From positions 8,432,001 through 8,496,000 of the forward strand of contig OZ249445.1 of assembly GCA_965235115.1 (NCBI GenBank): DNA of 64,000 nt, read 5' to 3'. The number at the start of each line of letters is the position of its first letter. Position 1 is the stretch's first letter. Below the pieces are notes generated by a model. The model had not been told where the DNA came from and ran no database searches. It worked only from the letters and a program-made list of their open reading frames with translations. Source of the DNA: Laetmonice hystrix (Eukaryota). The translations under genes were made by a program, and so were the position numbers. This document shows positions 1 to 42,796 of this stretch, one piece after another.

Positions 1-864
1 CTTGGGCTGGAGCAAACAGTACAGTGAGGGCTCCCTACATGTATTGAATGGCGTCATACTCGAGCAAACACTACAGTGAGGGTCTCTAGATGTATTGACC
101 GGCCTCAGACTGGAACAAACACTACAGTGAGGGCTGCCCACATGGACTGACTGGCCTTTTCTCGATCAAACACTACAGTGAGGCCTCTCTACATGTATTG
201 ACTGCCCTTGGGCTGGAGCAAACACTACAGTAAGGGCACCCTACATGTATTGACTGCCCTTCGGCTGGAACAAACACTACAGTGAGGGCTCCCTACATGT
301 ATTGACTGGCCTTATACTCGAGCAAACACTACAGTGAGGGCACTCTACATGTATTGACTGGCCTTATTGTCGAGCAAACACTACAGTGAGGGCTCCCTCC
401 ATGTAATGACTGGCCTTAGCCTGGAGCAAAACAGTGCAGTGAGGGCTCCCTACATGTACTGAGTGCCGTCATACTCCAGTACACTACAGTGGGGGCTCTC
501 TACATGTGTTCACTGAGCCTAGACTGAAACAACCACTACAGTGAGGGCTTACTACATGTATTGACTGGCCTTATACTCAAGCAAACACTACAGTGAGGGC
601 TCCCTACATGTATTGACTGCCCTTCGGCTGGAGCAAACACTACAGTGAGGGCTCCCTACATGTATTGACTGGCCTTATACTCGAGCAAACACTACAGTGA
701 GGGCAGTCTACATGTATTGACTGAGCTTAGACTGAAGCAAACACTACAGTGAGAGCTTACTACATGTATTGACCGGCCTTATACACGAGCAAACACTACA
801 GTGAGGCATCCCTCCATGTAATGACTGGCCTCAGACTGGAGCAAACACCACAGTGAGGGCTGCC
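1..864. repeat. Minisatellite, ~52-bp unit, ~16-17 copies (truncated by window start)
   Basis: Consensus GAGCAAACACTACAGTGAGGGCTCCCTACATGTATTGACTGGCCTTATACTC recurs every 51-52 bp (e.g. 10, 62, 113); no unique spacers. Confidence 0.95.
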
Positions 865-3800
865 ATCAAATAGATGTGGATTTTGTTGGTAGGGCTACTA
901 GGTACTGACCGCTCGGGGCATTAGGCTGTAACTGTCAAGTGCAAACAGAATTTACAAAATGTATTCCGTTTAGGACTCAGATGGCGCCTCGTTGGATGAA
1001 AGCTCCTGTTGTTTGAATAGATAAAAAAATATTGCAAAACAAATACAAACAGAAAGTAGCGTTGTTTCAGTCGGGTATAAGTGCTCTCGGGCTCTTGGCA
1101 AAATCTCAATGAAAACACAATGGTGTTCTAAAATCAGGGGAGGGGTTATGAAGTAAAAGTTTTAAGTGGGATCCTAAATTACGGTTGCACCTCCGAGGGA
1201 AATAGCCGTCTTCGCCGTCCAACCCCTCTTTTTTTCTCCAACCATGTCACGTATGAACGGGTAGCCTATGCTTAGGCTAAGATGCTCTTCTGGTACCTAT
1301 GTCAATCGAAATTAAAAGGTGGATAAAACTGTGCACCGTTATCACAATGAAAGATTATAATTCATGACGATGGAATAGACCTACCTCTACCCGACTTCAA
1401 ACTCGTATAGATATGAAAAGTTTCCCAGTCTTGATATATGGTTTATACTTTAGCAGGACGACACCCGCAACTGGCTGCAGGCGCCGCCTGGCGGTCAGTT
1501 TGTTAGCACAGAACCCCATTGCCTTTTTGTTGACGTTTTCCGCCCAGACTCTGCGGCCAAAGTTAACTGTCCCGTGATGTTGTTAACTATGAGAGTAAGA
1601 CGTGTCACGTGACGTTACAGACCGCTGTTAGGGCTCCCTCCCCCCGGGCCATCCGTCCCTAACCACCCTCTATGATCATACACCTGTCACTGACATCTGG
1701 CGGTACCTTTCATCTTTCTAACGGCGTCCCTCACCGACTACCATGACTACATAACCCCTACCCCCACCCCCTAAACCTAGCCACAAGTTTACAGGCTATA
1801 AAAATATGTCGCTGCGCAGTTTTCATGGCGCCTGCCCAAAAGTCCCCACTGCTGCCAGCCGGATTCCTGTCGGCTGTCAGCATACAGTCCCCGCTAGACG
1901 TGCCAGCACTGTGCCTTCAGTAATCTACGTGTGATGGCTGTCTTCAATGGACCACATACCAAGGGTAGTGCCCTGTTCGTGTCCCCCAGAACTACGGTGC
2001 TACACCCCAGTATTCCGTAATGAACACATACCAGGGGGTTAGTTGTTATCGAGGTTCACATGCCTGCCTAATAAGATCACAAGTTGCCCACGGGATCGAG
2101 TTCTTTGTACACACCTGTGGTTTTGGGGGTTGACAGGTGGGAAATGGATATTAATGGCGTGCGGTCAGCGGGGTAAGACACTTTCAAAGGGTCAGAAACT
2201 GGCCAGGATCGCAGCACTGCCTTAATCAGGACGCTCTTCCTGTAGTTTGAGATTAGGTGATTAACAATGTTGTTCTGTACCGTTATTAAAATGGAGGATA
2301 ATAATTACTGGTGGCGATGGCATACCTCCAGCCGACTTCAGGGCTCTCCAACTTGTAAAGATATCAACAGTCCCATGAATTAACTGTAACCATCAAATCA
2401 TGCGGTTTGTGTTACGACTTAAACGGAATGTGTGCTATTTCATCTTTCTTTTCTATCCAAAAAAGTGTGTTATTTCACTGTAGAGTGCGGGCCAGGGTAT
2501 TAATGTTGGGAATATGTAACAGTACACCAGCACTTAGTGACACTTATAACATTTGTTACGAAAGAATATAAAACCCCTGAGAGATTTTCTTCACACTAGC
2601 ACAACTTATTTGTTAGGATGGAAATTATGATTGCTCTCGGGGGTTGTTAAGGCCTTCCATCCGGCGCTATTATGTTAATGGATGCCATGAATAATAAAGA
2701 CATCTAAGGTGGCACTTCACTCTCACACCTTGAGACGTCCCTCAGGTTTCTCAGTGCTATAAGTCAGTGCCTTATGTAATGACAGAAAGTGCCGACCTTA
2801 GCCAATTGCCTTTGACCCGTCAGGTCAGGGGGGAGGAACAATAATACCTGTATACACACATGCGATTATCTACAAGGGAACAAAAATCGTAATGCTACAC
2901 AGAACACAGAACACCTATAGCACCTCTAATCCTTCGGGAGACTCTTGGCGGCTTCGCTCGATGTAATCCTTTGATCTAACTTAATGGTGTACCCGCAGAC
3001 ACAGGTCTGCAGGGTATTTAAGCCACATGCTAACTGCTAAATCCTTCAAGAATAAATAGTTGTTTTGCTTTAAGAAGAGTTTAAGCAAAATATTGTGAGA
3101 TTCTTGGAAATTGCAATGATACGGTCTGCATGCAGCGGTGATTTACTTGGACGTCCGTAAAGAAATGGAAACACGGGATTACGTATTACCAGGAACATAT
3201 TCAAGGGCATGTTGTCCTTGATACTAACGGGTATCCCCTCCCACAGGAACCCTTGGAGCAAAGGGTCTGTCAGACTGTCACGTCATGGGCAGTCTTGTTT
3301 CTCCTGGTGTTCTACACGACGCCAACTGTGCAGAGTTTGGTGTTTGGTGAAAACATCGCACTGAACACCCTCTTACAAGGTTGAATCGTCTCAATGGGCG
3401 TTTGTGTTGGTGGCCTTCGCCAATAACGAATTATCTATGTGGAAAAAGTGTTAACGAAGGTTTGTCATTAGGCTCTGCCTATCCTAATCTATGTAGAGTT
3501 AAGGCAGTGTTAATTGGGTGGGGCTAAGCCTAATTATGGAGAACAATGACCGTGTGAACGTGGGAATATACTGGTGTGGTTTGCTATTATAACCTGCAGG
3601 TTTGGATCACATCACTACACAAACATGGATGCTAGTTGTTGATTAATGTACACTCTCAGTCTTACTTAAAAAAGACTGCAAGAATCTCATGTAATTAGTG
3701 GTCCACAGGTAATTAGCGATCCATGCTCTAATTACTCTCTATGTTCAAATATGCGCCTTACTATAGCCCGCATGGTTCGTCCTAATAACATGAATTTATG

Positions 3801-5313
3801 AGGCCAGTAATTCAGGTATGTATATATAGAGTAATCCGTTAGTTGTTGGCGACTCATCCTTTGACACGCACTGTTAGATGCTATAAGTACTTGCACATGG
3901 CGACCTGGATCAGACATACTCGGTCACTAATTCTCCTAATCTCTCCCCATCAAGGACCAGGTATCTGTGAGCGAACCTTGTTTAGAACCTCAGTTGAAGT
4001 AGCGTGGAACACGCTATGCGAAAATAGGGTGGTTTTCTTGAATGAAATATTTGTTTGCAAACAATGGTCGTTTTGTGCCAGGGGTTCCATATTAGTATAC
4101 ACGTCTCAAACTCCCATCTGTCTACAAGATAGGTATTCTTTCTCGTCCCCTCGACCCACAAGGCAATGCTTATTCTACACTCAGCTGAGCATCAAGTATA
4201 ACTTGCATACAAAGTGACTATTTACCCCCTCTACCAAACCCTGGGTCACAGGGCTTATTAGTATTATCATTTTTTTGGCCTTGTTCTCAAGCATATCTCA
4301 TTGGTACTTGTTTGTTTGATGTGTTTCCGTTTTCCACTTGACCTGTGAATTTGAGAAAAAGATATCTGAATTCAGAATCTTCAGAAGAAAAAAGTCAAAC
4401 CAAGCTGCACTGACATTACAGTCAACAACTAAGGTCATTGTTTCTGTGCGTCAAAGCTGCCCTGCTTCCCTGTCAAGTCACTGAACCATGACAGGTCCGT
4501 CCTAAATCTCAGGCCAAACCAAAGTCCCAGCAGCCCCCAACGTTTGCTGTGAACCTGTTTTGAGTGCTCCCAGGCCGCACGCAGGACGTTTGGGCAGCTT
4601 GCCGATTTCCAAACCAGTTTGCCAGAAGGTGAAAAAGCGCATCTCGTGAGGATGTCACGTTTTTAACTAACCTCATACAATGCAAACGGTGCTGTTCGAC
4701 AAGACACGGAGGCCGGCCCCGACCCCCTCCTCCCCACGTAACATGACCCTCGACTTATACCATCCTCAAAAACAGCACCCTCAGAATGCCACATATTGGG
4801 GGAGAGGAGGCGTAAAACATCCAGCTCATGAAAAACCTGATGCCACCAGTAATTCGTCTTCGTTTTAGCGGGGGTTTTCTTTAAGGAACAAGCATGGGAG
4901 ACAGTCTATATAAAGTTTACATTTGGTTGGGCGCATTGATGGAATGTGTCAGTCTGAAGTGAAGATGTATACAATCCAGTAGTGGATCTGTCCAGGGCGT
5001 CATGCCGAGATGATACATCGTGTCAGCGAACATATGGCTGTACCACTCTCATTCCTGGACCTACATAATACACCGACCCTCTCGGAAACAAACTTTTGCT
5101 GGCCCTCTATACTTACAAATATTATGAAAACCATCAAAACGGACATGCCAACCATTCACTAATAACTACTCTGTCACTGAAACATATTCCTTTAGTTTCC
5201 ACCTTGTATGTCAAGAAGTACCTGAACCAGGGTCAATCGATGTCATTCCTGTGTAATGGGCCGGTGTGGCGCGAATATAGTGATCGTGTCAAAATTAGTG
5301 ACGATATGGAAGC

Positions 5314-5468
5314 CAGTGGCGGGTCCAGGGGGGTTTAGGGAGCCCTCTTAGGCACCCAATTTTGTATTTTTTCTCCATTGAACTTTCTGAATTGACCACC
5401 TCCCCCATCCAAAGCAAATTATCCCCTTAACCCCCCCCCCCCTTACCAAAATCCCGGAACCGCCCCTG
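5314..5468. mobile_element. MITE (non-autonomous DNA transposon), CAG(G/T)GGCGGATCC-type termini
   Basis: Imperfect TIRs cagtggcgggtcc / ggaaccgcccctg, internal G/C tracts, flanked on both sides by GAAGC (5-bp TSD). Confidence 0.75.
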
Positions 5469-5615
5469 GAAGCCTCCATTTCAATGGTTACTCACTTCAC
5501 GCCATGTCAGCCTGCCTATCGTATTCCTTCTTGATATTTCAAGCACTGACTCTATGAAAAAAAAAGTTGATATGTGTTCGGATGGAGAACTGATAGAAGC
5601 TTTGTGTATTTTCAG

Positions 5616-6220
5616 CTGCCAGTAAACGCCGGGAGACAGACTCTTTCTGGGGAAGCGCCTTGTTTGGGATTATATTACTGGCCTGGCTGGCCGTTGTTAC
5701 AGTCGTCGTTATCTTGGCTATATGTCTGTTTGTCTGCGCTCTCAAACGAACCAAACGGAATTACGGCTCCAGTCCTTCCAACTCCACCACCAAACAGGAC
5801 ATCAGCTGGGGAGAGACTGCCAACGACAACCTCTTCATTGCCTACATGCCCGACCGAAACGAAACGGACTCTGCCAAGGTGGCGGCGTACACTGGTCAAC
5901 CGGCACCGCCAGGAACCGGAACAGCTCCAGCCGGCGGCGGGAAGCCCGGAATGGGCATCCGTCGGAATCGGTCCGGTAACGTGTCCGAATACTCGTACGG
6001 ACACCTCGGCTCACCAGGAGAGGGCTTCAAGGACGTCACGACCAAATCTTTCCCAATGGAGACGGTATCCACAGAAAATGTCAACCATGTCAATCATGGC
6101 GACTTTGTGCTCATGCCGGACCCAAGTTACGGGAGTAGGGACTATATTCTGCCGCGCCAGGCAGACGGCGTGGTCCGTGCAACAAGTTCCGGCGGATATC
6201 GAACATCGAACCGGATGTAA
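5616..6220 (+). CDS. Terminal exon (TM helix + cytoplasmic tail) of a probable fourth paralogue of the collagen-stalk membrane protein family; upstream exons not found in window
   Basis: Acceptor tttgtgtattttcag|CT at 5616 (phase 1, as for the TM exon of the 40122-42796 gene). Encodes ...FWGSALFGIILLAWLAVVTVVVILAICLFVCALKRTKR, sharing the W-L-x-x-x-T TM motif and a cytoplasmic W-x-E-T with the other paralogues; stop 6220; AATAAA 6325-6330. Confidence 0.7.
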
Positions 6221-15413: not shown

Positions 15414-15534
15414 GGCCGCCCCATATCTTGGGTATACCAGAAGATTGTAAACGTTGTACGTGAGACAGACCAAGGACCTATCGAGAAAGGAATTTACCAG
15501 CTTGAAACCCCGAACCAACCCGACTGGGACTAGC

Positions 15535-18500
15535 ATGGATATATTAAGTTCACTTGGATTTGTGCTGGTGGGATGTTTGTTGCTGGCAGACTCCAATGCA
15601 CGTGAGTAGTTGATGTCTTGAACATTCCTCGACCAAACCTGGTCCATCCTTTCACCCAACGAGGACCCATAGACCGACGTCGGCTTTGGTCCAAACAGTA
15701 CTGGCCTGGCCGCGTATCTGAAGAATACTTTATATTAATCCCACTAGATATTATAACGATAACATCATATACTCGTGTATTATAATCTTGATTGAGGTTA
15801 AGGATGCGTGTGCTGCAGCTTATAATTAAGGCGAGAGTAAAGCTTTCCCGCTAAATGGGAATACGAGTAATGTAAAGGTGCAGTCGCGACACTTGTTCGC
15901 TTCCACAGGTGCACGCGGTTCGACGAGCCTGCTACCTTCTATTGATCTATAAATAATCAAACCAGGCGTTAGATGATAAACTCCAAAGGTACCATATTAA
16001 ATTTATGTGATTCCAGATCCAAGTACTCTCACTGTTTATTCAAACAAAAATCAATGAACCATACTTTATTTATTTATTCGTTTATTTTTTATCCTTGTCA
16101 CTGCCAGAATCCAGAAACCAACGAGTGCGGCAGGTGGGCACAGCCCTCGCACCCTCACCGTCTGGTGTTGACACGGCGGGCTCGGTGTTTCTCGTTAATG
16201 ATGGTTTCCTCAGTGAGGGCGTCATCTTCGCCTACGAGGCCTATTTCCGTAACCTTAACCCGGTGCGGTTTCAAGTATGGCGACCTTCGGCGAATTTGGT
16301 CAATGGAACAGACTTAAGAAGCTACACCCTCATTGGGGAAACCAGGGTGGTGCCAACTCTGAGGTTCCAGCCAGAAGTGGTGAGTATAGTCATGATATGT
16401 CATGATACTTGGTGATTCCAACCCGCCAGTCCGGGTCCCGGGGGAAGACTTAGTCCCGGACCCCATTCCCATTAGATTAAAGAAAAGAAAGTTTGAAATA
16501 ATCTGGGGCCCTGGTGAGCTCGGGTCATGGGGTAGGCCTATAGTTACCGTCCCGTTGCTACTGTAACTCCACAACAACAGTCAATGTTAAGTTCATTCAT
16601 CTGTCTTGGAAATACAATCACAGTTTTCATCTGTCGTATAGGAAGACATTTCTAGTCAAATAATTATAGTACATTCCCAATAAGGGAGGTTTGGAATGGC
16701 GAAGTTTGGGGAACCGTTTAGTTTCCACTTGGAGTCGTGACATTTCTAAAGATCAAAAACACAGAGAGGCCCATAACCCCCTAGTGATCTCACACCCCTA
16801 TAGGACGTCAAGCCTAATTATTCTTCCTACAATAAAGGGGATGACGTTTTGCTGCCGCTGGTTCCTAATCATATATCTTTGACGACAACACTGTTGACGT
16901 TAACCTAAGGCGTTGCCCTGGGTGAGGTCTGTTCACTACGCACTGTCATCAGTAGGGGCAAAACGCTAAATCTCATCATCCATACTGAAGTGGGAACGCA
17001 TTGTTCGCCTACAGAAGTAAACGCCTTATTGAACATCATTTTCTTTTATCACTCTTTATGAAAACATATTTACTTCTCACTTAGAGGATGTATTAGACCG
17101 TAAACATGCCAACGAAATGCCATCGCCAAGGGTGTGCTGTGGCTCATTCTATACGCATGTTGCCAACTGAATTCCTCACTAAATACGGCCCTGATTGGCG
17201 TAGAGAAATACTGTTGCTATCCGATAATATCGCAGACAGTAGAGTGGTTCTTAAGTCAACAGGTACTGAGGCAAGGCAATATTTCTAGGTCCTTCTTAGC
17301 GGGAAAGCAATGGTCACGACAGAATCACTGAAGCGATGTTCCCAAACGGTCACATAGGGACTCGAGCATGGCCGACTCCCAGGCCAGGCCGGGGCATTCA
17401 CTGTCGGGTCGGGGGTAGTCTATGGCGTCTTAGGTTTTCAGGGAAACCACTCGAGCGTATTGAGACGCTTCCTTCTTTTAACTTGTTCCAACTTTCATGC
17501 AACTTTCTCTCTCCTCATCTCTCTAATACATTAATAGATACCGGCTTCAATGTCAGAACGGGTGGACGGATTCAGAAATGCCGCTATTCCACTTTCGTTT
17601 ATAAATATTCAGGACTGCTATTTTAAGGCTAGACTCCTGCCGGGGTGGGTGGCCTGTGCTCGAGGCGTTGTATTGGTCGCTAATCTTTGGGCGTCCGTAC
17701 CGCAACCCTGGGCTCGCCGGTGTGGGTCAAACTGTAGTACACACTGGGACCAACCCCCCCAGTCCCAGGCTGCTGAAGCATGTCTATCCATCGGTCGTGG
17801 GAACCCTTCAAAATGATATCACACCAACTACTATATGTCACCCTCTACGACGGCGCCTTTGCATATCAAAACGATTGCTGACCCTTCTCTTGAAACCGAA
17901 TCTATAGAAATCGGACTTTCTATAATGCAGGACAGACCTTACAGCTCCGAGCTAAGTATTAGCTCCTGGCAAGTCCCACCGAGTTCAGTGCCTAGTAGGG
18001 GTCTATCAAGAGAGTGCTGTTTTTAACATCACTTCAGGCATGTACCTGTCTTTCATGTATCTATTTAAGGAAGCTTCCTGGTGGTTTTATATAATAGCAA
18101 GACACTGATGGGGGTGGGGGGGGGGGGGGGGCAGTCCAGAATCCAGACCTTATTAATAGCCTTTTATATTATACGTTCCCTCGCTCTTGTCAGGTAGACG
18201 CAGGTTTTCTAACAGGACCGTTTTTAATCTTTGTAGATCTACATCGAGTCTAAACTCGGACAGTGTACCCATGTCCAAGATCAGGATCGTTTGGGTGTAT
18301 TCTTCGAGGAGGCGCCTGGGTCTGTGTCGTACATGTTTGATCCTAACACTCCCAAGGCCCTCGCCTACACCTTACAGAACGCCTCTAACCCTGTACCCAC
18401 GGGGCAGACAGTCACCTTCGGCACACTCACCTTCCCTTATGACTTCTCAGTTGTCGCCTACATCGATCGAGGTGAGTCAAATCTCTTCCATGTCCCGTTT

Positions 18501-19878
18501 GAACGAATGATAACCAAAAGCATTGTGCAAGATAGAGGCAAACTTTTCTGCATCAGAAGTGCTAAACCGTTTACAACTAAATCGCGGCACATATGTTGCA
18601 GATTCACAGAGATTATAATATGGGATGTCTTTGTTCCAGATGTGTCCCAGTATGTGTTCAATGCGGACGACAGTGTGACCTGTCCACCTGGCCTTCTCAT
18701 CCCTGCCCATGAGGTGGTCACCATCGCGACCACCACACCACCACCTCCCCCTACCGGCCAGCCTGGAGTCCCCGGGCCCCCGGGACCTCAGGTAAAATCC
18801 CTGCTAAATCCGGAAACTTGTGAATGATGATAAACACAATCAAACAAACATATTCCTGGCTCTGGTTGGTTTAGAAATGAGGCTGTATTGTTGAGAAGGT
18901 ATAGAAGTGTCCAATCGGTACTTCCATCAATTATCATCTATTTTGGTTCCTGATCTCGACCGGATGGCTGTTTTCTTATGACCATGTATATGGACACTCT
19001 TGGAATGCGGAGCTGATTTGAGGTGTGGCGTATTTCTTTTTTATATATCTGACAGTGTTCTTATTTAATTGTTGCAGGGTGTTCCCGGACCTTTGGGACC
19101 TCGTGGTCCAGCTGGAGTCCCTGGTCCACCTGGACCAGTGGGACCTATAGGTCCAAGGGGTGACAACGGAGCTACAGGACCAAGTGGAGTTGCTGGGGTC
19201 GAAGGACCTATTGGTCCGCCAGGCCCCTTTGGCGCGACAGGTCCTAGAGGAGCTAAAGGCGACCGGGGACCCCAGGGTGTCGCTGGTCCACCCGGCTCGC
19301 CCGGCAAGAACGCTAACGAACTCCAACCGGGTCAAGTGGCTGGTGAAGATGGCAATTTCTTCTCAAATCCGACCACCGTTATGATCCTCCTTATCTGGCT
19401 CATCATTGTCACCATCCTCATCATACTCATCATTATTCTGGTGGCCACCATGCGCAGGCGACGACGACAACCCAAGATGTCGAGTGAAAGCGAACCGCAC
19501 ACTGCGCATTTCCCGCCAGGTTTGACAGCAGCAGACGACAGGGATTGGATGGGGACACTGAAGGAAGACTCTGAGGCTGGCTACAACAACGACACCATCA
19601 CCGTGGACGACAAGAGGAAATCAAAACTGAAGAAAGCTAATAGTAGCTTAAACGGTACAAGTACTAAACTTGCAGAACCAGATATGACGTCAACATTGAA
19701 ACCTCAACCGGATGTGACGACATCTGCGCAGCCGCCAATTTCACCGATAAGCCCCAAGTCACCAGATGACGGAACAAACTTCGCTTTTGAAAACGAGATT
19801 GGCGTGACGTCGGATACGATAACAAGAACATATGACAACCAAGGGAATCTCTCACACGACTCGATATCCCCCGAGTAA
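15535..19878 (+). CDS. Type I transmembrane protein with N-terminal globular domain and 30 Gly-X-Y collagen triplets (paralogue 2), 508 aa
   Basis: join(15535..15601,16108..16379,18237..18471,18640..18791,19078..19878); all GT-AG, phases 1,0,1,0 consistent, 1527 nt. Signal peptide [22 protein letters not shown]; head with [23 protein letters not shown]; collagen; [31 protein letters not shown] followed by RRRRR. Confidence 0.9.
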
Positions 19879-25850: not shown

Positions 25851-27429
25851 ACAGCGAGGGTGTAACAATGCTCTAACGAGTACCATAAAGAGAGATTTCT
25901 CATGTCATTATTCCATATTTATGAGACCTCATTTCTCGTCCCATATATTTATCACATCACCTGAATGTACCCATCCGTCTATGCGTTACCTAATACAATG
26001 ATGTCATTGTGTTTTTATAGATGGGTAGTTTTACCCCGTGGAGAAACGTGATCTACATGGACACTGCATGGGAAAAACTAAGGTATCTCTTCCTACATTC
26101 CGATTCGGACGGGGTGCACGAAACCAGCTCGGGGGGTTTCCGACTATTGTGTTTTGATACTATTTTCGGGTCCACTTCGTGCCGATTGTATCTCATGCCG
26201 TGTGTCCTGGGCCTAACCTTAGAACTGGCTATTTAATGCCCCGACCATTAAAGACAGGAGTCGCCAACAACACCGGCCACTACTATTTATAGGCTCATCC
26301 CTACCGAAGGCATGCTCCCGGGCCACTTTTTGTGATGGGGTGTTTCACAAAAGTACACAAAGGTACACAAAGAAAAGGCAATGAAAGAGGTCATCGTTTG
26401 GGCAGACTAATGGTCAATCCGCTAAATTAGGGTTGCTTATAGCAAGTGCTGGCCGCTTCAGGGGTAAACTTATTGTTTTCCTTCACCCGTAACACAAGCT
26501 CGCCACAAGGATGACAAGGACGGGCAGTCTGTACAATTGCTATGGTTTAGTCCAATCTATAAGTACTGAATTCACACAGCGACCACCATGAAAGCCGACC
26601 TCGAATGTACAAACATATGTTGAACAGCCTAGAGAAAGCCGCATGTCCTTTCAGGCATTGTATAATCCGAAACGTTTCAACGATGAATTTAGGACGGCTA
26701 TTGGTTACGCAACATGCCCGCAGGGAGAGACGCTGGGGACTTGGTGTGCAAACCGTTAGTAAAACGACACAAAGCTTTCGTATTGATCTAACTTCACATG
26801 GCGTGATTTCTACCAACAATTCTTTTGATGGGGATTCATTGAAAAGATCAATTATGGCTGAATGATTAACCGTGATAGGGCAGGAAGATCGATTATATTC
26901 CGTATATTCAATGCAATGAAATATTCAACGAATATACAAACTATTTACTATGTATTTACTAACTTTTAGACCATGTCTCAAAATGACAACCGACTTATTA
27001 AAGCTAGAAACCATATAATGGGTTCTCAGTAAAAACGTTCGCCCAAGCGGGTCTTTCTTTCATTGAAAGGCCTCGTTGCAGAAACTTAGAAACGGTATCC
27101 GATTATCCCGCAGGTAAAAGGTGATTCAGACAGGATGCATACCATCAAGGATGCAAATCCAAACAATTGTACAACACCTCATTACAACGCCATCTATGAC
27201 TAACCCAAAATATCTGGCGGGAGGTAAAGCGGCTATCCCCTGCTGGCCACATTCCTAAAATAACTTCGACCACTTAAGTCACCAAGCGGTGATGGTGTAA
27301 AATGACTTCGGCGACATCTGATAGGCGCAGCCCGTCTCAATCGATGGCACCCGACCAAAGTATTGATCACGTAAATATTTCCTCCCATTGCTATAAAAAA
27401 ACGTTTCCAAACAGTATGCCCGGAAAATT

Positions 27430-27837
27430 TGCATTTTGATATGGTAGATTATTTCTTCCGTCATCTCAGAATATCGGCCGTTCCAAAGTGACATGCATGC
27501 ATACTCAAGGTACGCCAGACGCCATTATACCTTTGCGTCTCATTTGATAACTGGAACACCTGCACTGGATGGAAACAAACCCGAGTCAGACGCACGCAGT
27601 TACTCTGCCACTGGAGCAATACTCTTGAACTCTTGCATTTTGATATGGTAGATTATTTCTTCCGTCATCTCAGAATATCGGCCGTTCCAAAGTGACATGC
27701 ATGCATACTCAAGGTACGCCAGACGCCATTATACCTTTGCGTCTCATTTGATAACTGGAACACCTGCACTGGATGGAAACAAACCCGAGTCAGACGCACG
27801 CAGTTACTCTGCCACTGGAGCAATACTCTTGAACTCT
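27430..27837. repeat. Perfect 204-bp tandem duplication
   Basis: 27430-27633 and 27634-27837 read identical base for base by eye. Confidence 0.92.
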
Positions 27838-28127: not shown

Positions 28128-31100
28128 ATGGCAATCAGATGGGGGTTAAGTTTGGTGGCCATCGGTTTGCTTCATCTTGTCGGCCTCACGCCGTTTGCCC
28201 ACGGTAAGTGATGCCTGATTTTGTATGTACAAGTACGAACGCGTTTATTGGCTCCATGTCTCCGCCATGACCGCGTCGTCCCCTTCAATGATATAATCCT
28301 ACATGTATTACCCGTCATGGATTATTCGGGAGAGCTTCAAGTGTCATATTTATCAATATATTTATCGACACAGTACCCTGGCCCATGCTCAGGCAGTGCC
28401 TATCCGATATATACATTTTGTACAGGTGTATATAGTTTACCCCCTCCCCCCATGTTGTATCAAACCTGGTGGATACCGTGGGAAGGATGGGGGTCGGCCT
28501 ATAGATATTGCTCGGGAACCCTGATCGTCTCGGCCACTGGGTGCGGGTTGTGAATGGAGAGGTGTTTTGAGTGGTCGGTGGCCCGAGAAACACGGGGATC
28601 CACTCGCCTAGTCCATGTATAGTGCATGTTTGACATGCTATAATGATCACGTCACGGCATGGTCTAACAATGAAGGATGGCCCCGGCCGGGGGGGGGCGG
28701 GGGGAAGGGTACCTGCCACCGCTGCCTGCCGTACGTGTGCGGCAGCGGTGGCAGGTACCCTCCCCCCCCCCCCGCCCCCCGTACGTGTGCGAACCACAGA
28801 GACGTATTTAAAACACTCAGCCTTTATGAGGAACATTGGCATAAAAAAATACACATTAATTACATTAGGAACGTGAGGGTCTACGCTGCACTGCGTGGGC
28901 CATAACATTAAGTGATTGTCGCAGAACGCACACTCAGCAATACAGTAAACAACCTATCGGTTGTGGAAAGAGGACCTTAGATAAAACAGCTCTCTTTATT
29001 AATTCATCGGGACGTATTGAAAATGGACCTATCTAAGTTCTGTTTCATGAGGACACACCTTTTAATCCGACCCTGGAATGTTTACACCTCCCATTGTGGC
29101 GGCAGTTTGCCCAAAGCAAAGCCAGTGAACCATTCATCATCGACTATATTTATGTTTTTAAAATGTCTGTAAAATAGCATGAATTAATTGCCTGTAACAA
29201 ATAACGTCCTGTTTTAACCTTATTGCCAATTACATGCATGAGGGAACAGATTATAGTCAGAGACGAAATGAGAGAAAAGGTTTTGTTTGTTTTATTACTG
29301 TTAATTTAGTCCGGAACTGTATTTAACTCGTCACGCTGGTTATTTTAATTTGTTTCTAAATTTAGTTTTAAACAGATTATTCCTATGACGTGTTGCAAAC
29401 AGAAAACAGCCATATAAAAAGCTGACAATTTCATCTACTAATTTACAGTTTATTGTATTGCAGGCAATGTTGTACGCCTGGGGAACGCGCTTCAAGCGTC
29501 AACATCTGGAGTTGACATTCCTGGCGTCATATTCCTCATGAATGACGTCATCTTACAGGAAGGAATTGTGTTCGCCTTCTCCGCCTTCTTCCGGTCGTCT
29601 AAACCAATCAGGATCCAGATCTGGCGGCCCGTCAACCCCAACATCGAACAGGAACCAGAAGCCTCTAGGCCCTTCCGGTTGTTATTTGAGACCCGCATCA
29701 TTCCGTCAGTCATCAACCGCCGGGAAGATGTAAGTGTCACCACAAACACTATAATACAGCTACCACGAGCAAAGCACATCTTTCAGTTATACTGTACCCT
29801 TGGTGAAAACATTATGAGCGGTTTGAAGCGTGGTGTATAAATTGATTCCAAAACGGTGTCCACTTACTGAGTGTATAGCGTACTAAAATGTTGTCTATAA
29901 AGGTCTGGTGTATCTGAGCTATGTGAGAACCCTTTCAGTAGCGGTAGGCCTACAGGTCTATTGCCCGGGGCAGCTACAAGGCCATAACATCCCATGAAGG
30001 GCACTGGGGTTATTTCCCATGACTAAAATACGCCACCATTTTGGAGGCGCCAAAATAACTTTTATTGAGAGAGGAGCAGTATTGCCTATATTCCAGGACA
30101 CTTTTATAAGTGGTCTTCTCAAAGCAAGACTAAAATATTTAAAGTGCTTCCAGATAATAGTAATTTGACCCAGGAATGTGTCAAGCACATGTTAGTTCAA
30201 GGTTCACTTTGTAAAACGTGCATTTAATCCCCGGAATGGCATGGTTGTTTTGAAGTAGGTTTATGGGGATTGAAGCCGATTTACTGGTGCGTTAAAACCA
30301 CCTGTAATAAGCGTGGGGTCGGCCCGGTTACTCGACCATTACTGTGAGAGCACCCATACTGGCTTGGTAATCACTGTCCCGACTCGCATTAAACCACAGA
30401 GAGACCGGCTTAACATGTTTTACTCCAGTAACCTCAATCAAATACCACTTCAACACCACGCCAGAAATAACTGACAACTGAAAAAGCATGGATGCAAAAC
30501 GGGATTACTCTTAAAACTGACAAATAAAATAACTATAAAACAAGAGCTACCTGAAATAAAAAGGCCTTTCACCTCCGGCACAGCAACAATGTGACACTAG
30601 AGACCCGCAGAATATAATCTGATATTATAGTTTGATTATAAAGGGACTTCATAAAAACCCACTTGAATGCGTATGTAACCTTGGGAATCTAACACTGGCG
30701 ATTCTAACACATCAGTCCTATATCACTATATGGTCTGGTTTCAGATGTACATTGAGAGTAAGCTGGTTCAGAGGTGTGTCCGTGTCAACCAGGGCGACCG
30801 CCTGGGTGTCTACCTGGAGGAGGCTCCAGGTGCTGTCGCCTACTTCTTTGACAGCACCAAACCCGACGCCCTCGGCCACAATGTCGGCAACAACCCTAAA
30901 CTCAAAATCAACGACACAGTCGGCTTCGACATCCTCAAGTTCCCCTACGATTTCTCCCTCTCTGCCTATATCTTCACAAGTAAGTATGCATGTACCCCTT
31001 GCTGAATCCCAACTGGGCATTGTAAATTCAGCTGTTCCTGAAACTTGGTGTAATGAGCTTTTGTCTGAGACCTGTATCGCCTTTATGACAGACATTATAT

Positions 31101-32323
31101 GTGCGGACATATGATAGGCCACTTATGTTATTGCGCTTCTGTATTTTCGGCCTGAGAAGAGCGAGATGTCCTGACTTTTATATTTTCCGTAATTGCCACA
31201 TCGTGCAAGGGATTGCCGTCTGACGTCTCAATATGTAATGCATTAGCAATAATCATCCTACCTTCCTGTGACTTCCAGATCTAACTCATTTTACGCCCAG
31301 TCCATACGGCTGTCCCGTGGACACCCTGATACCAGACCACGCCAACCCAACTCTGCCGCCCACCACGGTACCTACCATCGCCCCAGGAGTCCCAGGTCAA
31401 CCTGGCCCACAGGTTAGTTCAATTACAAACTTCTGCTAAAACAAGGGGCTCATTGTAGTCGATGTAATTATCCAGAGAACCTAGTAACAGAAACCCTCTC
31501 TTAATTCTCTTTAAGAGGTAAAAACTACATAATATATTATTTTGACTCAGTAATCGAAACAATGCTTTATATTGGTGTCTCATACGTACAATAATGTATT
31601 GAAATACAATTTGTATGCCTTTCCCATCTTCCCATCTTCAGGTCCATACTTTTAACATGCACACTAAAATGCCCACAAAGTGTTATCCGGTCAAATTAAA
31701 ACCGACAATATTTCACTTCACAGGGTCCAAGCGGGATTGTGGGTGGCACTGGACAAGTTGGGAGACCTGGACCAGCAGGTAACCCCGGACCGGCAGGCCA
31801 GGCGGGTCAGGTCGGGGGCGGCGGCGCGGACGGTCCTGACGGCCCGACAGGACCGGCCGGACCGGAGGGTCAGATGGGAAACCGAGGGATGGTCGGACCA
31901 AAGGGCTTTGTGGGGGACCGCGGTCTGGCAGGTCCACCTGGACCCCCCGGGTCGGCGGGACTGATAGGCAACAAGACGGTGGACGAAATCCCACAGGCAG
32001 TCTTTGGTCGCACCATCAACCCCACACTCTTAATGATCATCCTCATCTGGCTCATCATCTGTACAGCCATCGTCATCATCATCGTTATCGTCATCCTGTG
32101 TATCCGCAGGAGGGAGAGACAGTATGAACACAAGCGGCTACCTTCAGACCCTGACTTCAAACCGGCCTGGATGGAAACAGTCAGTGACGAGGAGGACTCC
32201 CGCTACATGACCCAGGACACGAGGCGCACCTCGCTCGAGGCGGCCATCATACCCGAAAACATTCCCAGCTATTCATTTGATAACAGTGTTCTCACTATCG
32301 GAGATGAACCACACAAGACTTAA
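28128..32323 (+). CDS. Type I transmembrane protein with N-terminal globular domain and 31 Gly-X-Y collagen triplets (paralogue 3), 436 aa
   Basis: join(28128..28203,29464..29729,30745..30979,31279..31412,31724..32323); GT-AG, phases 1,0,1,0 identical to paralogue 2, 1311 nt. Signal peptide MAIRWGLSLVAIGLLHLVGLTPFAHG; AFFR..PIRIQIWRP, YIESKL..C..V..GDRLG, FPYDFS; TM NPTLLMIILIWLIICTAIVIIIVIVILCI-RRR. Confidence 0.9.
28689..28791. repeat. GC-rich hairpin / inverted repeat in intron 1 of paralogue 3
   Basis: Perfect 21-bp arms AGGGTACCTGCCACCGCTGCC (28706-28726) / GGCAGCGGTGGCAGGTACCCT (28741-28761), 14-nt loop, extended by complementary G and C tracts. Confidence 0.85.
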
Positions 32324-32879
32324 GTTTTACGCATTTCTTATCATCTTGCAGGTTTACACCTGAAGGTATTTTCTCCTAGTTGAGAAAATCCCGTGATTGA
32401 CTGCTATGAAAAAGACATATTTAGGAGTTTGAACACTCCGCCCTACCAGTAACAGTTTACGGCCAAGGTGAGCGGTGCTATAGCCGAGTATAAACAGGGC
32501 ATTAGTGAATTCGTACATGTCTCATAATGCAACAAGTTCCATTTCTTCGGAAACAATGACACTATGATTCGATGAGTGGATAAATTTCTGTAAATAATTG
32601 CCATGGACAAGTTGCATTTTTTCCCTTCAGGTTTTACGGTGTGTCGCAGTAAAACAAGAGTTGATTCTTCGTCTCAATAACGTGGTGTGCACTGTATGCA
32701 AACGGACCTGTATAATTAGGCCTGAACCACAGAATACCGGTGTGACTAAATGAAAGATTACGATAACATAACCGCTGTAATAATAGGGGCTATTCATAGC
32801 AGCTAGGTTTATGCATACTAAACCAGAAGAAAATGAAACGTGAACTTTTTTTCTCTGGGTGAGTTGTGTTCAGCATGCA

Positions 32880-33541
32880 CAGACGAAACCAGGAGGAGAC
32901 AGAGAGAACATGTCTGACATACTTGGAGGTCTGTGTGCGTACAGACGAAATTATGAGGAGGCAGAAGGAAGCTGTCTGACATACTTGGAGGTCTGTGTGC
33001 GTACAGACGAAATCAGGAAAGATTGAACATGTCTGACATACTTGGAAGTCTGTGTGCGTACAGACGAAATCAGGAGGAGGCAGAGAGAACATGTCTGACA
33101 TATACTTGGAGGTCTGTGTGCGTCCAGACGAAATCAGAAGGCAGAGAGAACATGTCTGACCATACTTGGAGGCCCTTGTGCGTACAGACGAAATCAGGAA
33201 AGATTGAACATGTCTGACATACTTGGAAGTCTGTGTGCGTACAGACGAAATCAGAAGGCAGAGAGAACATGTCTGACCATACTTGGGGGTCTGTGTGCGT
33301 ACAGACGAAATCAGGAGGAGGCAGAGAGAACATGTCTGACATATACTTGGAGGTCTGTGTGCGTCCAGACGAAATCAGAAGGCAGAGAGAACATGTCTGA
33401 CCATACTTGGAGGCCTGTGTGCGTACAGACAAAATCAGGAAAGATTGAACATGTCTGACATACTTGGAGGTCTGTGTGCGTACAGACGAAATCAGAAGGC
33501 AGAGAGAACATGTCTGACCATACCTGGAGGCCTGTGTGCGT
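32880..33541. repeat. ~60-bp minisatellite, 11 copies, with 241-bp higher-order structure
   Basis: Units of 57-64 bp (ACAGACGAAATCAG...AACATGTCTGACATACTTGGAGGTCTGTGTGCGT); variant order A-B-C-B repeated from 33060 and 33301. Confidence 0.95.
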
Positions 33542-34206
33542 ACACATGGCTGTCAGTCTGTACATATTAAAACGTATAAACAATAATCACAAAGATTACG
33601 TGTATATAATACAATTATAATTGTATGAAGCGTCTTGTTTTAAACAGATACGGCCTTTTATCGATCTCTATCTCGTGTTGTATATAGTGTAATATATGAT
33701 GTAAATTAAGAGAATAAATTATTTTGAAATTTACATTTTATAGTCTCTATTATGATGGTTGCATTTCTATAACTGATAAGTGGGCATCGTCGATTAAATA
33801 GTATTATTATATTTCAATAGGAATGACCGAGCCCAAGTCAACGATATAGATTTAGTAACACAATTTGCCATGTACAGTACAACGATTTCGGTCGGTGAAC
33901 CACTTGCAAAAATCAGAGCCATCTAGCGTCGAGCATTATCACAATTTTGTTGGTCCATCTTTATATGAATGACTTGACAACAATAATCTCATTTATAATT
34001 TCCATTGATCGGCAATATGATCACTCATAAATTTTACTGTTTTATCTATCGTACTAATAATTTCTCCAATCCCTTTGCTGTGGTGGCAGGCATCGGAGTG
34101 GCCAAGTGCCTTTCCAATTAATGACATTATTTTCCACCAGGTGGCGATGAAATCATCACTGGCAGTAAGCGTAGTCATATATTCACAGTCACTATTTGAA
34201 GGTAAT

Positions 34207-36054
34207 TTAATGCAATAATGTTTGGAATGGGTATTCTCCATAAGACAGCGGCAAGAATACTGTGGCCACGGTAAGTATGCCTGGGCCACCGAAGTCGTCG
34301 TTGATAACCGTGTGTGGGTGTTGTGATCGTTCAGTCATTCGTCTTCCCAATGATCGGACCATCCGTAGCTGGGCTGCCAACCTCCTCTGCATCCACAATA
34401 CGCGGCTCACCAGTGGCTCTAATCCACTCTCTTGTTGCAGTAAAACTTTTTCGCTGGCACGGTTATTGATTAATAATAAGTTTCCGTTTATTGTTGTCTC
34501 AGGTTCAGATTGTAATAAGCAAGTTTCCTCTGATGGTTCGTGATGCTCAGCTATAGATCTATGATGTGCAGCTGTTGAACCTAATTTGGTTGAGGTACCA
34601 TAGACATAGGCGCTGTTTGCAGAGGAACAAACTTCTACTTGTTTCCCACACTGCTGTACTGTTGACCGCGCCCATGCAGTTCGCAGGTACGTGCAGCTGT
34701 TGGCCGTTTGAGGCGACAAGCACGTTTCAGCAGTGATCTTCGTTCTGACCGCTAGGCTCGCGCTAGCTATCCCCTGGCGGTGAGTTTTAACATCAATATT
34801 GGCCTGGCTGACATGGCGGCGGCTGATCAAGGGTGTGGCGCTCAGTCCCTGAGTTCTGGTCACATTGCTTATTACTTCCACAATGGGAGATTTCGATGTG
34901 AGCGTCTTCCCTTTCGGATTCTGTTTTATGACACGACCACTGCCTCTAGATGATAACTGAGGCCTACTTCTTGCTGTGGGTTCTGTCTTTTCCTTGAGGT
35001 GATGCGTTTTTCCCCTTGTTTTCCCGCCCATGGAATTATCTTCTTTATAAGAGACTGGAATTTTCGCTGGCTTTCCTTTGTCACATTCTTTGATGTTGGT
35101 AGCAGTAGCGTTAGGCAAACCCTGGGGACATACCTTTTCTAAAACTCTAGATGTCTTCTTTTTGAATGTCACAGTCTTTACCACAGTCGTAGAGTTTAAT
35201 ACAATTTGTTGTCGCCTGGCATTCTTTGTAGTGCCCAAACTCTGAATCGATGGTAATTTGGCGCCTTGTTTTGCTGGTACTACGGATACAGACTTTATCT
35301 CTACACCTGTTTGTTCGATGGCCTTACTGCCGCCATGTAGGCCTTTATTTGGGGGAACAATAGTTTTCTCCCTATTTTCCCGTATAGGCTTCTGTTGTAA
35401 GTGATCTTTGGAAGGCTTCTGTTGTAAGTGATCTTTAGAAGGCTGGTAAGAGTTTGGAGCTCGGATAGTGATACATTTCGTGTCACTTATAGTACCAACC
35501 ATTGTTTTGCCCTGGTTTTTAACTAAGCGGGTGATGGGTCTTGGAATAAGGCTCTTCTTGAACACCTCCGTCACATTTCCACCGTCCTTGCAATCGCTTG
35601 TATTGCCTTTCATATTTGCACCGGTCGAGGAGTTACCAGAGTTTAGGCCAACATTTTCTACCCTTATGTCATTGTTTTTACCAACTCTTGATTTCATCCG
35701 ATGGACTACAGCTTTTTTTATTAATTCGAGTGCCGAGGGTTCGACAGGTGGCTGTTTTTTCTTTTCTCTTGAATCTTCAGCTGCTGAAGTTTGAAAATCC
35801 TTTGGAGGCTCTACTTGTGTCGATCCTGGTGTATTCTTTGTGGGGTCTCTCCGAGTTTTGGACGCAATGGAAGTGGCATGGCCTGAAATCCATGCTTTAT
35901 TTCTTTGTTTTTCTCCATCACTTGTATGCCCCGCCCTACTGGAGTTTAAAATGCTGACTTTGATGCTACTTCTCTTTTTATCTCTGATTCCTTTCACTTG
36001 CCTCAAGAAGGTGGTCACTGTTGTGGACTTGGACTCGGGCGTTGAGTGGCGCAT
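34207..36054 (-). CDS. Intronless orphan ORF, 615 aa, Lys/Arg/Ser/Thr-rich, probably disordered; no recognisable domain
   Basis: 1848-nt open frame; ATG has A at -3 and an in-frame stop 33 nt upstream; frame-preserving 27-bp internal duplication (PSKDHLQQK x2, 35387-35444); TATA box and CRE cluster upstream. Confidence 0.7.
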   Translation of the reverse strand: MRHSTPESKSTTVTTFLRQVKGIRDKKRSSIKVSILNSSRAGHTSDGEKQRNKAWISGHATSIASKTRRDPTKNTPGSTQVEPPKDFQTSAAEDSREKKKQPPVEPSALELIKKAVVHRMKSRVGKNNDIRVENVGLNSGNSSTGANMKGNTSDCKDGGNVTEVFKKSLIPRPITRLVKNQGKTMVGTISDTKCITIRAPNSYQPSKDHLQQKPSKDHLQQKPIRENREKTIVPPNKGLHGGSKAIEQTGVEIKSVSVVPAKQGAKLPSIQSLGTTKNARRQQIVLNSTTVVKTVTFKKKTSRVLEKVCPQGLPNATATNIKECDKGKPAKIPVSYKEDNSMGGKTRGKTHHLKEKTEPTARSRPQLSSRGSGRVIKQNPKGKTLTSKSPIVEVISNVTRTQGLSATPLISRRHVSQANIDVKTHRQGIASASLAVRTKITAETCLSPQTANSCTYLRTAWARSTVQQCGKQVEVCSSANSAYVYGTSTKLGSTAAHHRSIAEHHEPSEETCLLQSEPETTINGNLLLINNRASEKVLLQQESGLEPLVSRVLWMQRRLAAQLRMVRSLGRRMTERSQHPHTVINDDFGGPGILTVATVFLPLSYGEYPFQTLLH

Positions 36055-36160
36055 CCTTCTGTGGAGTGTGACAGAGGTAGGCCGCTATCCTAGGTGTGTT
36101 ATCTTGAGATATTCAGCAGACAGAAAGTCATTATCTTTGGCCATGAATCATCGCTGCAGT

Positions 36161-40121: not shown

Positions 40122-42796
40122 TCAGAAAGCAGTCCGGCCCTCCTGTATGGAGTCATAGGTGGGCTCCACGCCGGGGTTGTCAAAGCCACCTGGGGTTGAT
40201 GTGCCGTTCGGGCCCTCGTATTTCTTCCACAGATCGTTTTGGCTGTCGGCCCAGCGCAGGTTATTGTTGTATTTGTTTTTCCGTCGACAAGTGACACAGA
40301 GAACGACACTGACCAGGAGGATGGTGACCAGAGTCAGCCAGATGATGAGGCCAAGGATCAGATATGGATTCAGGAAGTTCCAGCACCATGTGCAGTCCCC
40401 AACAACCGACTCTGATATCATAAAGAAAGGAGAACAATTAGTACAAAACAATCTCTCAAATGCCTTAAAGTGAAATGAAAAAAATATATAATGATATGGG
40501 GAGTTATCTTTCAAAACGCTATCCGATGTCCTCCCATACCATGTGTCCAGGTTCGAAACCCTTGGCCTTAAAAAGTACAAGTAAAACAAATGGGATACTC
40601 ACCCATTCGAGTTTTCGCTACAATGGCAGTTTGACCATCGTGTCCAGGGGGACCCTGCTTTCCTTCTGACCCTCGAACACCCTGGGGTCCTTGCTGACCG
40701 GGGGGTCCTTTGGGACCGGCAACACCCTGAGGTCCTCGGTCTCCCCTGTCACCCTTGTCTCCTCTGGATCCCGGCAGTCCTGGCCGTCCAGGGCGACCCT
40801 CCATGCCGGGAGGTCCTTCAGGTCCTGCAGGCCCTTGGGGTCCCATTGCACCCTACAGTGACAGAAGACTCCATTTTTAATTCACAAATTTAATCAACAT
40901 TTTCTGCAAATTGCAGATCACATTATATGTTAGAAACTGTACGGTATGCTGAGAGGTGTTTTTCTAATGTTCCTAATGTCTTATCAATCTAATGGTTTGG
41001 GTGTTTTAAAGACTTACCGTTGCTCCAACCGGGCCGCGGACTGAAGGTAGATCGGATGGAATTGCCAAAGTCTTTGGACAGTCTGGCTGACCGTTTGTTG
41101 GATAGAAACTCATATCTGTAAAACATGTAGAGGAATATAATTGTCGATGCCTTAAAGGTCATTATGTCTACCACCTTGTTTTAAATGTCATTATCTTCAC
41201 GTGACCAAAGATTTGTATCGTCCTAACCGCTGCTATTGGCTACAGCTTTATGGACCAAGTGATAAGAAGATGCGTACCGGTGTCGACATATGCGGCAGCT
41301 GAGAAGATGTAAGGGAAGGCGAGTGTATCAAACGAGACGACCGAGCCGACTGTGGGCACCTCGGACTGGTTTCTGGCCGTGTGTTGGTAGGCCTCAGCCT
41401 TGCGCCGGTCAAACGTGTAGGCCACGGAGCCGCTGACCTCGGGGTTATAGAGACCCAGGCGGTCATTGTCCAGAACACGGATACACCGAAACCCCTGGCG
41501 ACTGTGGATATAGATCTGGAATAAATGGAGTTATCTTTAAATATTATTATTGTCAGAATTTGTCAAATCTTGTCTCTTACTCTAACAAGTTTTTAGGAGT
41601 TTGCGAGCGATAAGAATTATTACAATTATTGACACTGGAGTCTGGGAAATTAACGCAATCTTTCCATCGGTACGCTGCACTTCGTTTTGCCCAGACTCCT
41701 GTATGGCCTCTTATATTCCTACTATTCCTGTGATTTAAATCGTTAAAATAGATTGTCAATCAATGTGTGTTCGTGAAATTTCTATTTTCAGGGACTTACA
41801 TCTTCTCTGCCACCACTGACAGCTGGAGTAAAAGGCCAATCCATGACCAACCGGAAGTGTCGAGTCCTGTTCACTGGTCGCCATATTTGGAAATGGACGG
41901 GGTTATTGTTACGGAAGTAGGCAGAGAAGGCAAAGACAACGCCCCTCTGGAGCGCCACGTTGTCAAGTAGGAAGGTTGTGCGCTGCCAGTCCGCGCCAAC
42001 GCTGGAAGCCGTTACTTCATTCCCTACACGCTCAACACGACCTACAGATTCAACAGAAAAGGTGCATCTGGTATTGATGAAGGTTGACTTGGAATGGATG
42101 TTCCAATGTTAAAATTAAAAGCAAAGTTTATCATGCTTACGGTTCCAGGTCCTAACAAAAGGCATTGACTATATATTTCTTATCCTGTACATCTCACAGA
42201 AACACATAAATATTCTGAGGATGCAGGTATTATTCGGTCACAAAAAAATCGACATGTAAGCGCAGAAAGAGCAGAGGCAGAGAGCATAAAACTTTTACTG
42301 GCTATACATTTGAACAGATCTGAATGTCTATATACAATTCTTGTCGTTTTTGCAGCTGAAGTGAAAAAAAAGGGGCAGAACAGCCCTGTTTTATGTGTTG
42401 CACAAACAGTACCAACCTGGTTCGAGGTTTAAAGTATGTTTCTTGTAATGTTATATCTTTATAAAAATGGCCTTTCAAAGAAAATAACGAATATTTGTTT
42501 TTACAGAAAAAAGTCTTTGCATTGGATTCTCCTTTCAGCGCCACTGTATGAACCATACCCGCACCTCAGAAAACAGTATCAAGTCAGACACCTCGTGACA
42601 ACTTACAGAAATGGTGTTTTTATTGTTACTGTATTACCTTTGTGCCTGTACTTTTTTCAATGAAACTTAATAGAGTAGGCTTAGTCGCGCCACGTTTGTT
42701 TTTCTGAAAATGTATAAAGGGAACAGCCAGCTTACCTGTGGAAACTAGGTGAACCAGCACCGTGAAGAAGAAGACATCAATTGCTCTGGCTCGCAT
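40122..42796 (-). CDS. Type I transmembrane protein with N-terminal globular domain and 27 Gly-X-Y collagen triplets (paralogue 4), 392 aa
   Basis: complement(join(42736..42796,41800..42041,41278..41515,41018..41115,40603..40852,40122..40411)); GT-AG, phases 1,0,1,0,1, 1179 nt. Signal MRARAIDVFFFTVLVHLVSTG; AYFRNNNPVHFQIWRP, DNDRLG, FPYIFS; TM NPYLILGLIIWLTLVTILLVSVVLCVTC-RRK; C-terminus ...GRTAF. Confidence 0.9.

Follow-up and report, generated by a model that had tools for sequence, protein, structure and literature searches.

An unnamed head domain with a predicted lectin-like sandwich fold in tandem membrane collagens of Laetmonice hystrix

A stretch of 64,000 nucleotides from the genome of Laetmonice hystrix (GenBank assembly GCA_965235115.1, contig OZ249445.1, positions 8,432,001 to 8,496,000; hereafter the window, numbered from its first base) carries three paralogous genes, here genes 1 to 3, in each of which two exons encode an extracellular head that precedes a collagen helix. 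Judged by its sequence and by that of its relatives, this head is a real, autonomous domain of ~165 amino acids. The sequence family is new, its general fold is known, and the protein architecture in which it sits is unusual. The novelty is not one of category, since both the lectin-like sandwich and the receptor on a collagen stalk are familiar and domains that lack a name and are confined to one lineage are no rarity; what is distinctive is the clean domain definition, the reversed polarity of the protein, the conserved tail motif and the occurrence as tandem paralogues. With a probability of roughly 60%, the head would be the ligand-binding, lectin-like sandwich tip of a trimeric type I membrane collagen receptor.

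The head as a sequence family

The six head exons had been located in an earlier annotation made from the letters alone (the original prediction), and they do translate to the motifs given there, which are present in three of three genes, once the phase of head exon A is considered; this exon opens with two bases that finish the upstream codon, and the protein is read in the third frame of the exon coordinates (Table 1). The gene 1 borders were correct to the base. One high-depth contig of 2275 bases from the public run X4 joins 15452-15601, 16108-16379, 18237-18471, 18640-18791 and 19078 onward, and each piece that it skips (15601|16108, 16379|18237, 18471|18640 and 18791|19078) is GT..AG. 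In the same contig the last exon continues unbroken from the collagen across the membrane helix and the tail into the 3' untranslated region. X4 comes from the same sample as the genome and its kind is not on record; since three other runs hold the unspliced genomic form, it behaves as a transcript assembly. The positions and phases of the head introns are identical across the three genes, whose models have intact reading frames of 508, 436 and 392 amino acids (genes 1, 2 and 3). That these are pseudogenes was ruled out by the intact frames, the canonical splice sites and the spliced gene 1 contig.

Exactly two cysteines lie in each mature head plus linker (C123/C206 in gene 1, C125/C204 in gene 2 and C112/C193 in gene 3), and each head has two N-x-S/T sequons, the sole shared position being N161 of gene 1 and N150 of gene 3; both features had been foreseen. 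In an alignment of 42 heads (A3) there are 26 single-head collagen members. The strand cysteine and the linker cysteine occur together in all 25 whose aligned stretch reaches the linker; the other, P0033, has the strand cysteine and its aligned stretch ends before the linker. In two-cysteine heads of the Intoshia type the first cysteine is paired with a different one (Y-P-C-V-F-S), and both are absent from P0002, P0006 and P0125. This co-occurrence would fit an intrachain bond, although the pattern tracks phylogeny and is not proof. Most likely, the strand cysteine and that of the C-P linker would form an intrachain disulphide tying the linker to the sandwich.

The heads of the three paralogues are 42-45% identical, with a nonsynonymous divergence (dN) of ~0.5-0.6 and a saturated synonymous divergence (dS, >1.6); the duplications are therefore old and the copies are under constraint. 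Head exon B of gene 1, searched in six frames against all 627 Mb of the genome, matched its counterparts in the two other genes at E 1e-15 and 1e-13, a similarity far above chance level, and eight places were found, representing at least eight copies. One of these (L004), ~15 kb upstream of the window, is a head exon B of the same kind as in genes 1-3 and so a fourth tandem copy. The window itself contains an exon that encodes the membrane helix and tail of a fourth paralogue (Table 1), and no collagen run of at least four triplets was seen in its positions 1-5600; this exon and the head exon at L004 may belong to one gene. At another locus (L007, contig 19, ~7.296-7.299 Mb, minus strand) two first-half head exons flank one second-half exon; from this exon order it is a tandem-head gene, like those of the multi-head proteins of Intoshia and Owenia.

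A profile of seven exon B sequences, searched against 1.84 billion representative proteins, found 290 clusters at E<=1e-3, of which 134 reached E<=1e-10. About 20 full-length matches repeat the whole architecture. In others the heads are arranged in tandem arrays of 4-6 with a period of ~180 residues, which lack collagen in P0001, P0002 and P0008 and are accompanied by collagen and calcium-binding EGF domains in P0006. From these arrays, and from the architectures without collagen, the head behaves as an independent module. The named relatives, all annotated as 'hypothetical' or 'uncharacterized', come from Lamellibrachia satsuma, Owenia fusiformis, Capitella teleta, Paralvinella palmiformis, Dimorphilus gyrociliatus and the orthonectid Intoshia linei; orthonectids are now usually placed among the annelids, and by these relatives the window would very probably be of annelid origin. 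One bacterial match (P0007, 3047 amino acids, E 6e-25) was rejected as an artefact of 17 identical repeats, each contributing 6 bits against 35 profile positions.

Searches by structure and by language model added unnamed clusters with sponges and annelids as their recorded members (TM, template modelling score, 0.68-0.72; feature scores 0.93-0.94 with 190-194 shared features), and also domains without a name from invertebrate proteins in which cadherin, sushi, kringle, EGF or kinase domains are present. These matches, which depend on predicted structures and embeddings, suggest that the head family may be wider and older than the annelids; sequence did not confirm this. A search for further homologues with the head alignment returned exon-sized fragments only and did not widen the taxonomic range, and a single-exon Atlas search gave only low-score leads.

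The head had not been recognised as a named Pfam domain in the original prediction, and no characterised family was found to cover the region in any search. There was no Pfam match at E<=10 for the six head exons, and no recurrent family among the 42 heads isolated as contiguous sequences; full-length relatives gave Collagen (PF01391) only. The latter result also rules out that a known domain was hidden by the splitting of the head between exons. PF18560 (Lectin_like, 27-bit cut-off) was matched neither by the six exons or the 42 heads at E<=10 nor in six frames in the worm's own genome; the galactose-binding-domain-like models (PF00754, PF08005, PF22633 and others) had no match at E<=10 in any of the 42 heads. 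Nothing matched the head in PHROGs, and a profile of the 42 heads run against the sequences of the Protein Data Bank (PDB) gave only two chance rows at E 0.75.

Predicted fold and structural neighbours

An AlphaFold2 model was made of residues 21-205 of P0004, the closest full-length relative. It is all-β, with 14 strands and only two helices, both very short, and every segment is at 50 or above in predicted local distance difference (pLDDT); the mean pLDDT is 93.4 and the predicted TM score (pTM) 0.89. The compact β fold that had been proposed is thus borne out by this model. The C-terminal linker, including the second cysteine, was modelled at pLDDT 93-95, and so would pack on the sandwich.

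Foldseek found no solved structure at E<=1e-3 for the head model. In an exhaustive VIA alignment to 48,161 solved chains, the highest scores were those of the Cwp84 lectin-like domain of Clostridioides difficile (PDB 4ci7 residues 335-497, PF18560; score 11.4 over 138 residues at 2.8 Å), a capsid protein of cyanophage A4 (9jwb_Z; 11.4 over 147) and the tail tip of mycobacteriophage Bxb1 (9d93; 11.0 over 154). These were followed by a minor capsid protein of PBCV-1 (8h2i; 9.4), a baseplate protein of phage phi812 (9euf; 9.1), two carbohydrate or polymer esterases (8.4-8.8) and PHR domains (6.7-7.4), with CBM32, CBM62, CBM29, discoidin, F-type lectin, neuropilin b1, IFT25 and XRCC1 at about 6. 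The same list of neighbours was reported for the Cwp84 domain by the authors of its structure (PMC4089489). Furthermore, a language-model search that is independent of the model placed PF18560 and PF08005 (PHR) as the nearest named families.

When compared with 4ci7, the solved Cwp84 member, the head model has the same three-dimensional fold; identity is only 10%, with no sequence relationship. The Cwp84 domain is bacterial and is fused to a cysteine protease, unlike the head, which is carried on collagen. The viral jelly rolls are capsid-decoration or tail-tip domains of viruses that infect bacteria or algae, with 5-14% identity to the head; the likeness may come from kinship or from convergence on a shared type of sandwich. 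Among the matches of the head model in BFVD are some phage and giant-virus proteins annotated as collagen-repeat, which are weak (TM 0.28-0.44) and may represent an analogous layout of collagen plus jelly roll. The galactose-binding-domain-like group (CBM32, discoidin or F5/8 type C, F-type lectin, PHR) had middling scores of a kind that the aligner itself calls common; its signature residues are absent from the head, which is larger (~165 as against 130-150 residues).

The original prediction had proposed a jelly roll that was either C1q/TNF-like or carbohydrate-binding-like. The second part was supported, the nearest fold being the lectin-like one of Cwp84, and the first was not. A divergent trimeric jelly roll of the C1q/TNF type would account for a globular head attached to collagen, and Foldseek did return weak PDB rows for Eiger, FasL, TL1A, TNF, TRAIL and C1q (E 0.009-0.04). 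However, these rows have TM scores of 0.25-0.31 and root mean square deviations of 8-12 Å, no such protein is among the 50 best rows of the VIA alignment, neither PF00386 (C1q) nor PF00229 (TNF) was matched even at E 10 by the six exons and 42 heads, and the head lies N-terminal to its collagen, the opposite of C1q proteins. A C1q/TNF origin is consequently very improbable. From the model it is concluded that the head probably folds as a jelly-roll sandwich like those of galactose-binding-domain-like modules, with the Cwp84 domain and the phage domains as its nearest counterparts.

Conservation in A3, when mapped on the model, is higher in strands than in loops (0.52 vs 0.37), and insertions fall in loops. 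The near-invariant residues are in strands or at strand ends: Gly33, Arg54-Pro55 (of W-R-P), Leu68, Asp102 and Gly105 (of G-D-R-L-G), and Pro152 and Phe155 (of F-P-Y-D-F). Conservation is least in the loops at model residues 56-63 and 121-140, where insertions are found and pLDDT is at its lowest (81-83). Such a distribution would be typical of a conserved scaffold that bears variable loops for binding.

Protein architecture and the proposed role of the head

All three proteins have the same order: a signal peptide, the ~165-residue head, a linker of the form C-P-x-x-L-[LA]-I-P, a Pro/Thr-rich spacer, uninterrupted G-X-Y triplets (30, 31 and 27 in genes 1, 2 and 3), a membrane helix and a tail. 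The triplets were recognised as collagen triple helix repeats (PF01391) in gene 1 (E 1.3e-12) and in gene 2 (E 7.3e-11); for gene 3 the stretch scanned contained the last exon only. The membrane helix is hydrophobic, has ~25 residues and is directly followed by a cluster of Arg and Lys. Since an N-terminal signal peptide is combined with a basic cluster after the single helix, the topology is type I, and the head is therefore the most distal part, with the collagen stalk between it and the membrane.

The tails of genes 1 and 2 contain W-M-G-T-L-K-x-x-[ST]-E-x-x-Y-S-N-x-T. In the broader form W-[MIT]-x-x-[LM]-[KR]-x-x-[ST]-[ED]-x-x-Y-S-N-x-T this motif is shared with about half of the full-length relatives, sometimes twice in one tail, and the order of head, collagen, membrane helix, basic cluster and W...Y-S-N motif recurs across the family. 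The gene 3 tail is without the motif and ends P-T-Y-D-S-I. Y-x-N is the consensus for SH2 domains of the Grb2 type, and on the strength of this consensus the tail tyrosine is a possible phosphotyrosine (pY-x-N) site.

A familiar group of proteins has a comparable construction. SR-A, MARCO, the collectin CL-P1, ectodysplasin and collagens XIII, XXIII and XXV likewise carry their globular or binding end on a stalk of trimeric collagen with one membrane helix, and presumably bind by avidity. These are type II proteins in which the N-terminus is intracellular and the head C-terminal, whereas the worm proteins are type I with the head N-terminal. In the known collagen-stalked receptors the head belongs to the SRCR, C-type lectin or TNF family; here it is the unnamed sandwich. 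To our knowledge, every membrane collagen and collagenous receptor is built the opposite way round from the window proteins. The membrane-associated collagens whose triple helices are interrupted (MACITs) are defined by type II topology, interrupted helices and a conserved C-terminal cysteine motif, and none was found in Annelida (PMC4678570). The window proteins do not fit this definition, having an N-terminal signal peptide, a C-terminal membrane helix and, unlike MACITs, one uninterrupted helix.

If the head is the binding tip of such a receptor, the conserved motifs that lie in strands (G-x-x-F-A-x-x-A-x-F, F-Q-I-W-R-P, G-D-R-L-G and F-P-Y-D-F-S) would build its core, and the loops that follow W-R-P or link the G-S-V-A-Y strand to the F-D strand, which vary in sequence and length, would form the end that contacts the ligand. 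Such variable loops would make the paralogues differ in specificity. Three chains would be joined by the collagen helix of 27-31 triplets, and, as 30 triplets at ~0.29 nm per residue make a rod of ~25 nm, the trimer would hold three heads at about that height above the membrane, where they could bind a repetitive ligand by avidity. The ligand would most likely be a glycan or a matrix polymer, with a protein also possible, and the membrane helix and the conserved tyrosine motif of the tail may couple binding to signalling or uptake.

It could also be that the head is a folding device, a non-collagenous trimerisation domain that registers the chains and nucleates the triple helix, in the manner of NC1 domains or C-propeptides, and has no ligand of its own. 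A nucleating role had been suggested in the original prediction. The head does adjoin the helix, and the C-P-x-x-L-L-I-P linker before the first G-X-Y triplet is conserved, but the head also occurs in proteins without collagen, and this role is therefore unlikely. Alternatively, the head may be a module for protein-protein interaction or adhesion rather than a lectin, its partner being a protein, or a second copy of the head located on an adjacent cell or within the matrix of the cuticle. The relatives with tandem arrays would suit such a role, and the same sandwich serves protein contacts in PHR domains, IFT25 and the N-terminal domain of XRCC1. This is quite possible, though less likely than a lectin-like tip.

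The use of this fold for protein contacts is one of several points that weigh against a ligand-binding lectin-like tip. There is no known ligand for the head family or for its closest structural neighbour; the Cwp84 domain has been called lectin-like by fold alone, and the usual sugar site is absent from it (PMC4089489). The structural model is of the homologue P0004, which is 45-60% identical to the window heads, and not of the window's own spliced head, and it was read through secondary structure and confidence rather than atomic coordinates. A prediction of three head copies as a homotrimer scored 0.00 with the alignment unused and gives no evidence either way. Finally, the transcript evidence is for gene 1 only, genes 2 and 3 being predicted models.

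On a broader scale, and tentatively, the head may represent an extracellular domain of old metazoan origin, with a range from sponges to annelids and no name in any domain database, that was recruited in annelids as the ligand-binding tip of a hitherto undescribed class of type I trimeric membrane collagen receptors signalling through pY-x-N, with loops of different specificity in the tandem paralogues. In any case it adds to the unnamed domains a confidently modelled extracellular family whose limits are clear, which occurs in several architectures and for which A3 serves as seed alignment, and it defines the recognition end of a membrane collagen of reversed polarity. If the head binds glycans or matrix polymers, these proteins would be candidates for surface recognition in annelids, such as cuticle or chaeta attachment, microbe sensing or the recognition of symbionts by tubeworms; if it binds proteins, they would be candidates for a new adhesion system. 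The family is tractable, since the head is small and secreted, has two cysteines and, for gene 1, is deeply covered in the X4 spliced contig.

Gene models and other features of the window

Coordinates of the gene models and of the conserved motifs are collected in Table 1. The window has the composition of eukaryotic DNA, at 40-50% G+C and with short exons separated by GT..AG introns. In gene 3 an extra intron is predicted between the collagen and the membrane helix (GTGAGT donor after 40603, TATCAG acceptor before 40411).

Table 1. Positions of gene-model exons and conserved motifs in the window
Feature	Position	Strand	Remarks
Fourth paralogue, membrane-helix and tail exon	5597..6217	+	contains FGIILLAWLAVVTVVVILAICLFVCALKRTKRN
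Gene 1 exon 1	15535..15601	+	ATG and 22-residue signal peptide; phase 1 end; GTGAGT donor; junction 15601|16108 in X4 contig
Gene 1 head exon A	16108..16379	+	N-terminal head half, strands 1-5, including FQVWRP
Gene 1 head exon B	18237..18471	+	C-terminal head half: Cys123, DRLG, FPYDFS
Gene 1 linker exon	18640..18791	+	head end, C-P-P-G-L-L-I-P with Cys206, Pro/Thr-rich spacer, initial G-X-Y triplets
Gene 1 last coding exon	19078..19878	+	remaining collagen, membrane helix, RRRRR stop-transfer cluster, cytoplasmic tail, stop codon
Gene 1 collagen helix	18756-19311		over linker and last exons
Gene 1 membrane helix	19372-19452
Gene 1 tail motif	19546-19584		W...Y-S-N-x-T
Gene 2 signal-peptide exon (predicted)	28128..28203	+	MAIRWGLSLVAIGLLHLVGLTPFAH; GTAAGT donor; phase- and hydrophobicity-constrained scan
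Gene 2 head exon A	29464..29729	+	sequence, canonical splice sites
Gene 2 head exon B	30745..30979	+	sequence, canonical splice sites
Gene 2 linker exon	31279..31412	+	G-C-P-V-D-T-L-I-P; collagen helix begins
Gene 2 last exon	31724..32323	+	collagen, membrane helix 32024-32104, tail with WMETVSDEEDSRY
Gene 2 tail motif	32168-32206		W...Y-S-N-x-T
Gene 3 signal-peptide exon (predicted)	42736..42796	-	MRARAIDVFFFTVLVHLVST; GTAAGC donor; phase- and hydrophobicity-constrained scan
Gene 3 head exon A	41800..42041	-	sequence, canonical splice sites
Gene 3 head exon B	41278..41515	-	sequence, canonical splice sites
Gene 3 linker exon	41018..41115	-	D-C-P-K-T-L-A-I-P; collagen helix begins
Gene 3 collagen exon	40603..40852	-	completes 27 triplets in all
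Gene 3 last exon	40122..40411	-	juxtamembrane C-x-x-C, membrane helix, short tail
G-[VI]-[VI]-F-A-[YF]-x-A-[YF]-F-R	gene 1 16218-16250; gene 2 29562-29594; gene 3 41943-41911
[FI]-Q-[IV]-W-R-P	gene 1 16269-16286; gene 2 29613-29630; gene 3 41892-41875
C-x-x-V-x-x-x-D-R-L-G	gene 1 18264-18296; gene 2 30775-30807; gene 3 41485-41453
F-P-Y-x-F-S	gene 1 18432-18449; gene 2 30940-30957; gene 3 41317-41300
C-P in following exon	gene 1 18681-18686; gene 2 31311-31316; gene 3 41080-41075

Within the second intron of gene 1 there is a G-rich tract at 18104-18137 (poly-G at ~18115-18131), at which the DNA-run contigs are interrupted and 31-base fragments accumulate in large number. Two repeats flank gene 2. 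Some 300 bases upstream of its predicted first exon, positions 27429-27837 are a perfect tandem duplication (204-base unit, 2.0 copies, 100% identity) that looks recent; directly downstream of the gene, at 32879-33544, lies a minisatellite, open in several frames, whose units measure 117, 181 or 241 bases and are 86-92% identical. A long intronless open frame occupies 34207-36168, between genes 2 and 3, and the AT skew of -0.26 at 34001-36000 is conspicuous in the composition profile of the window.

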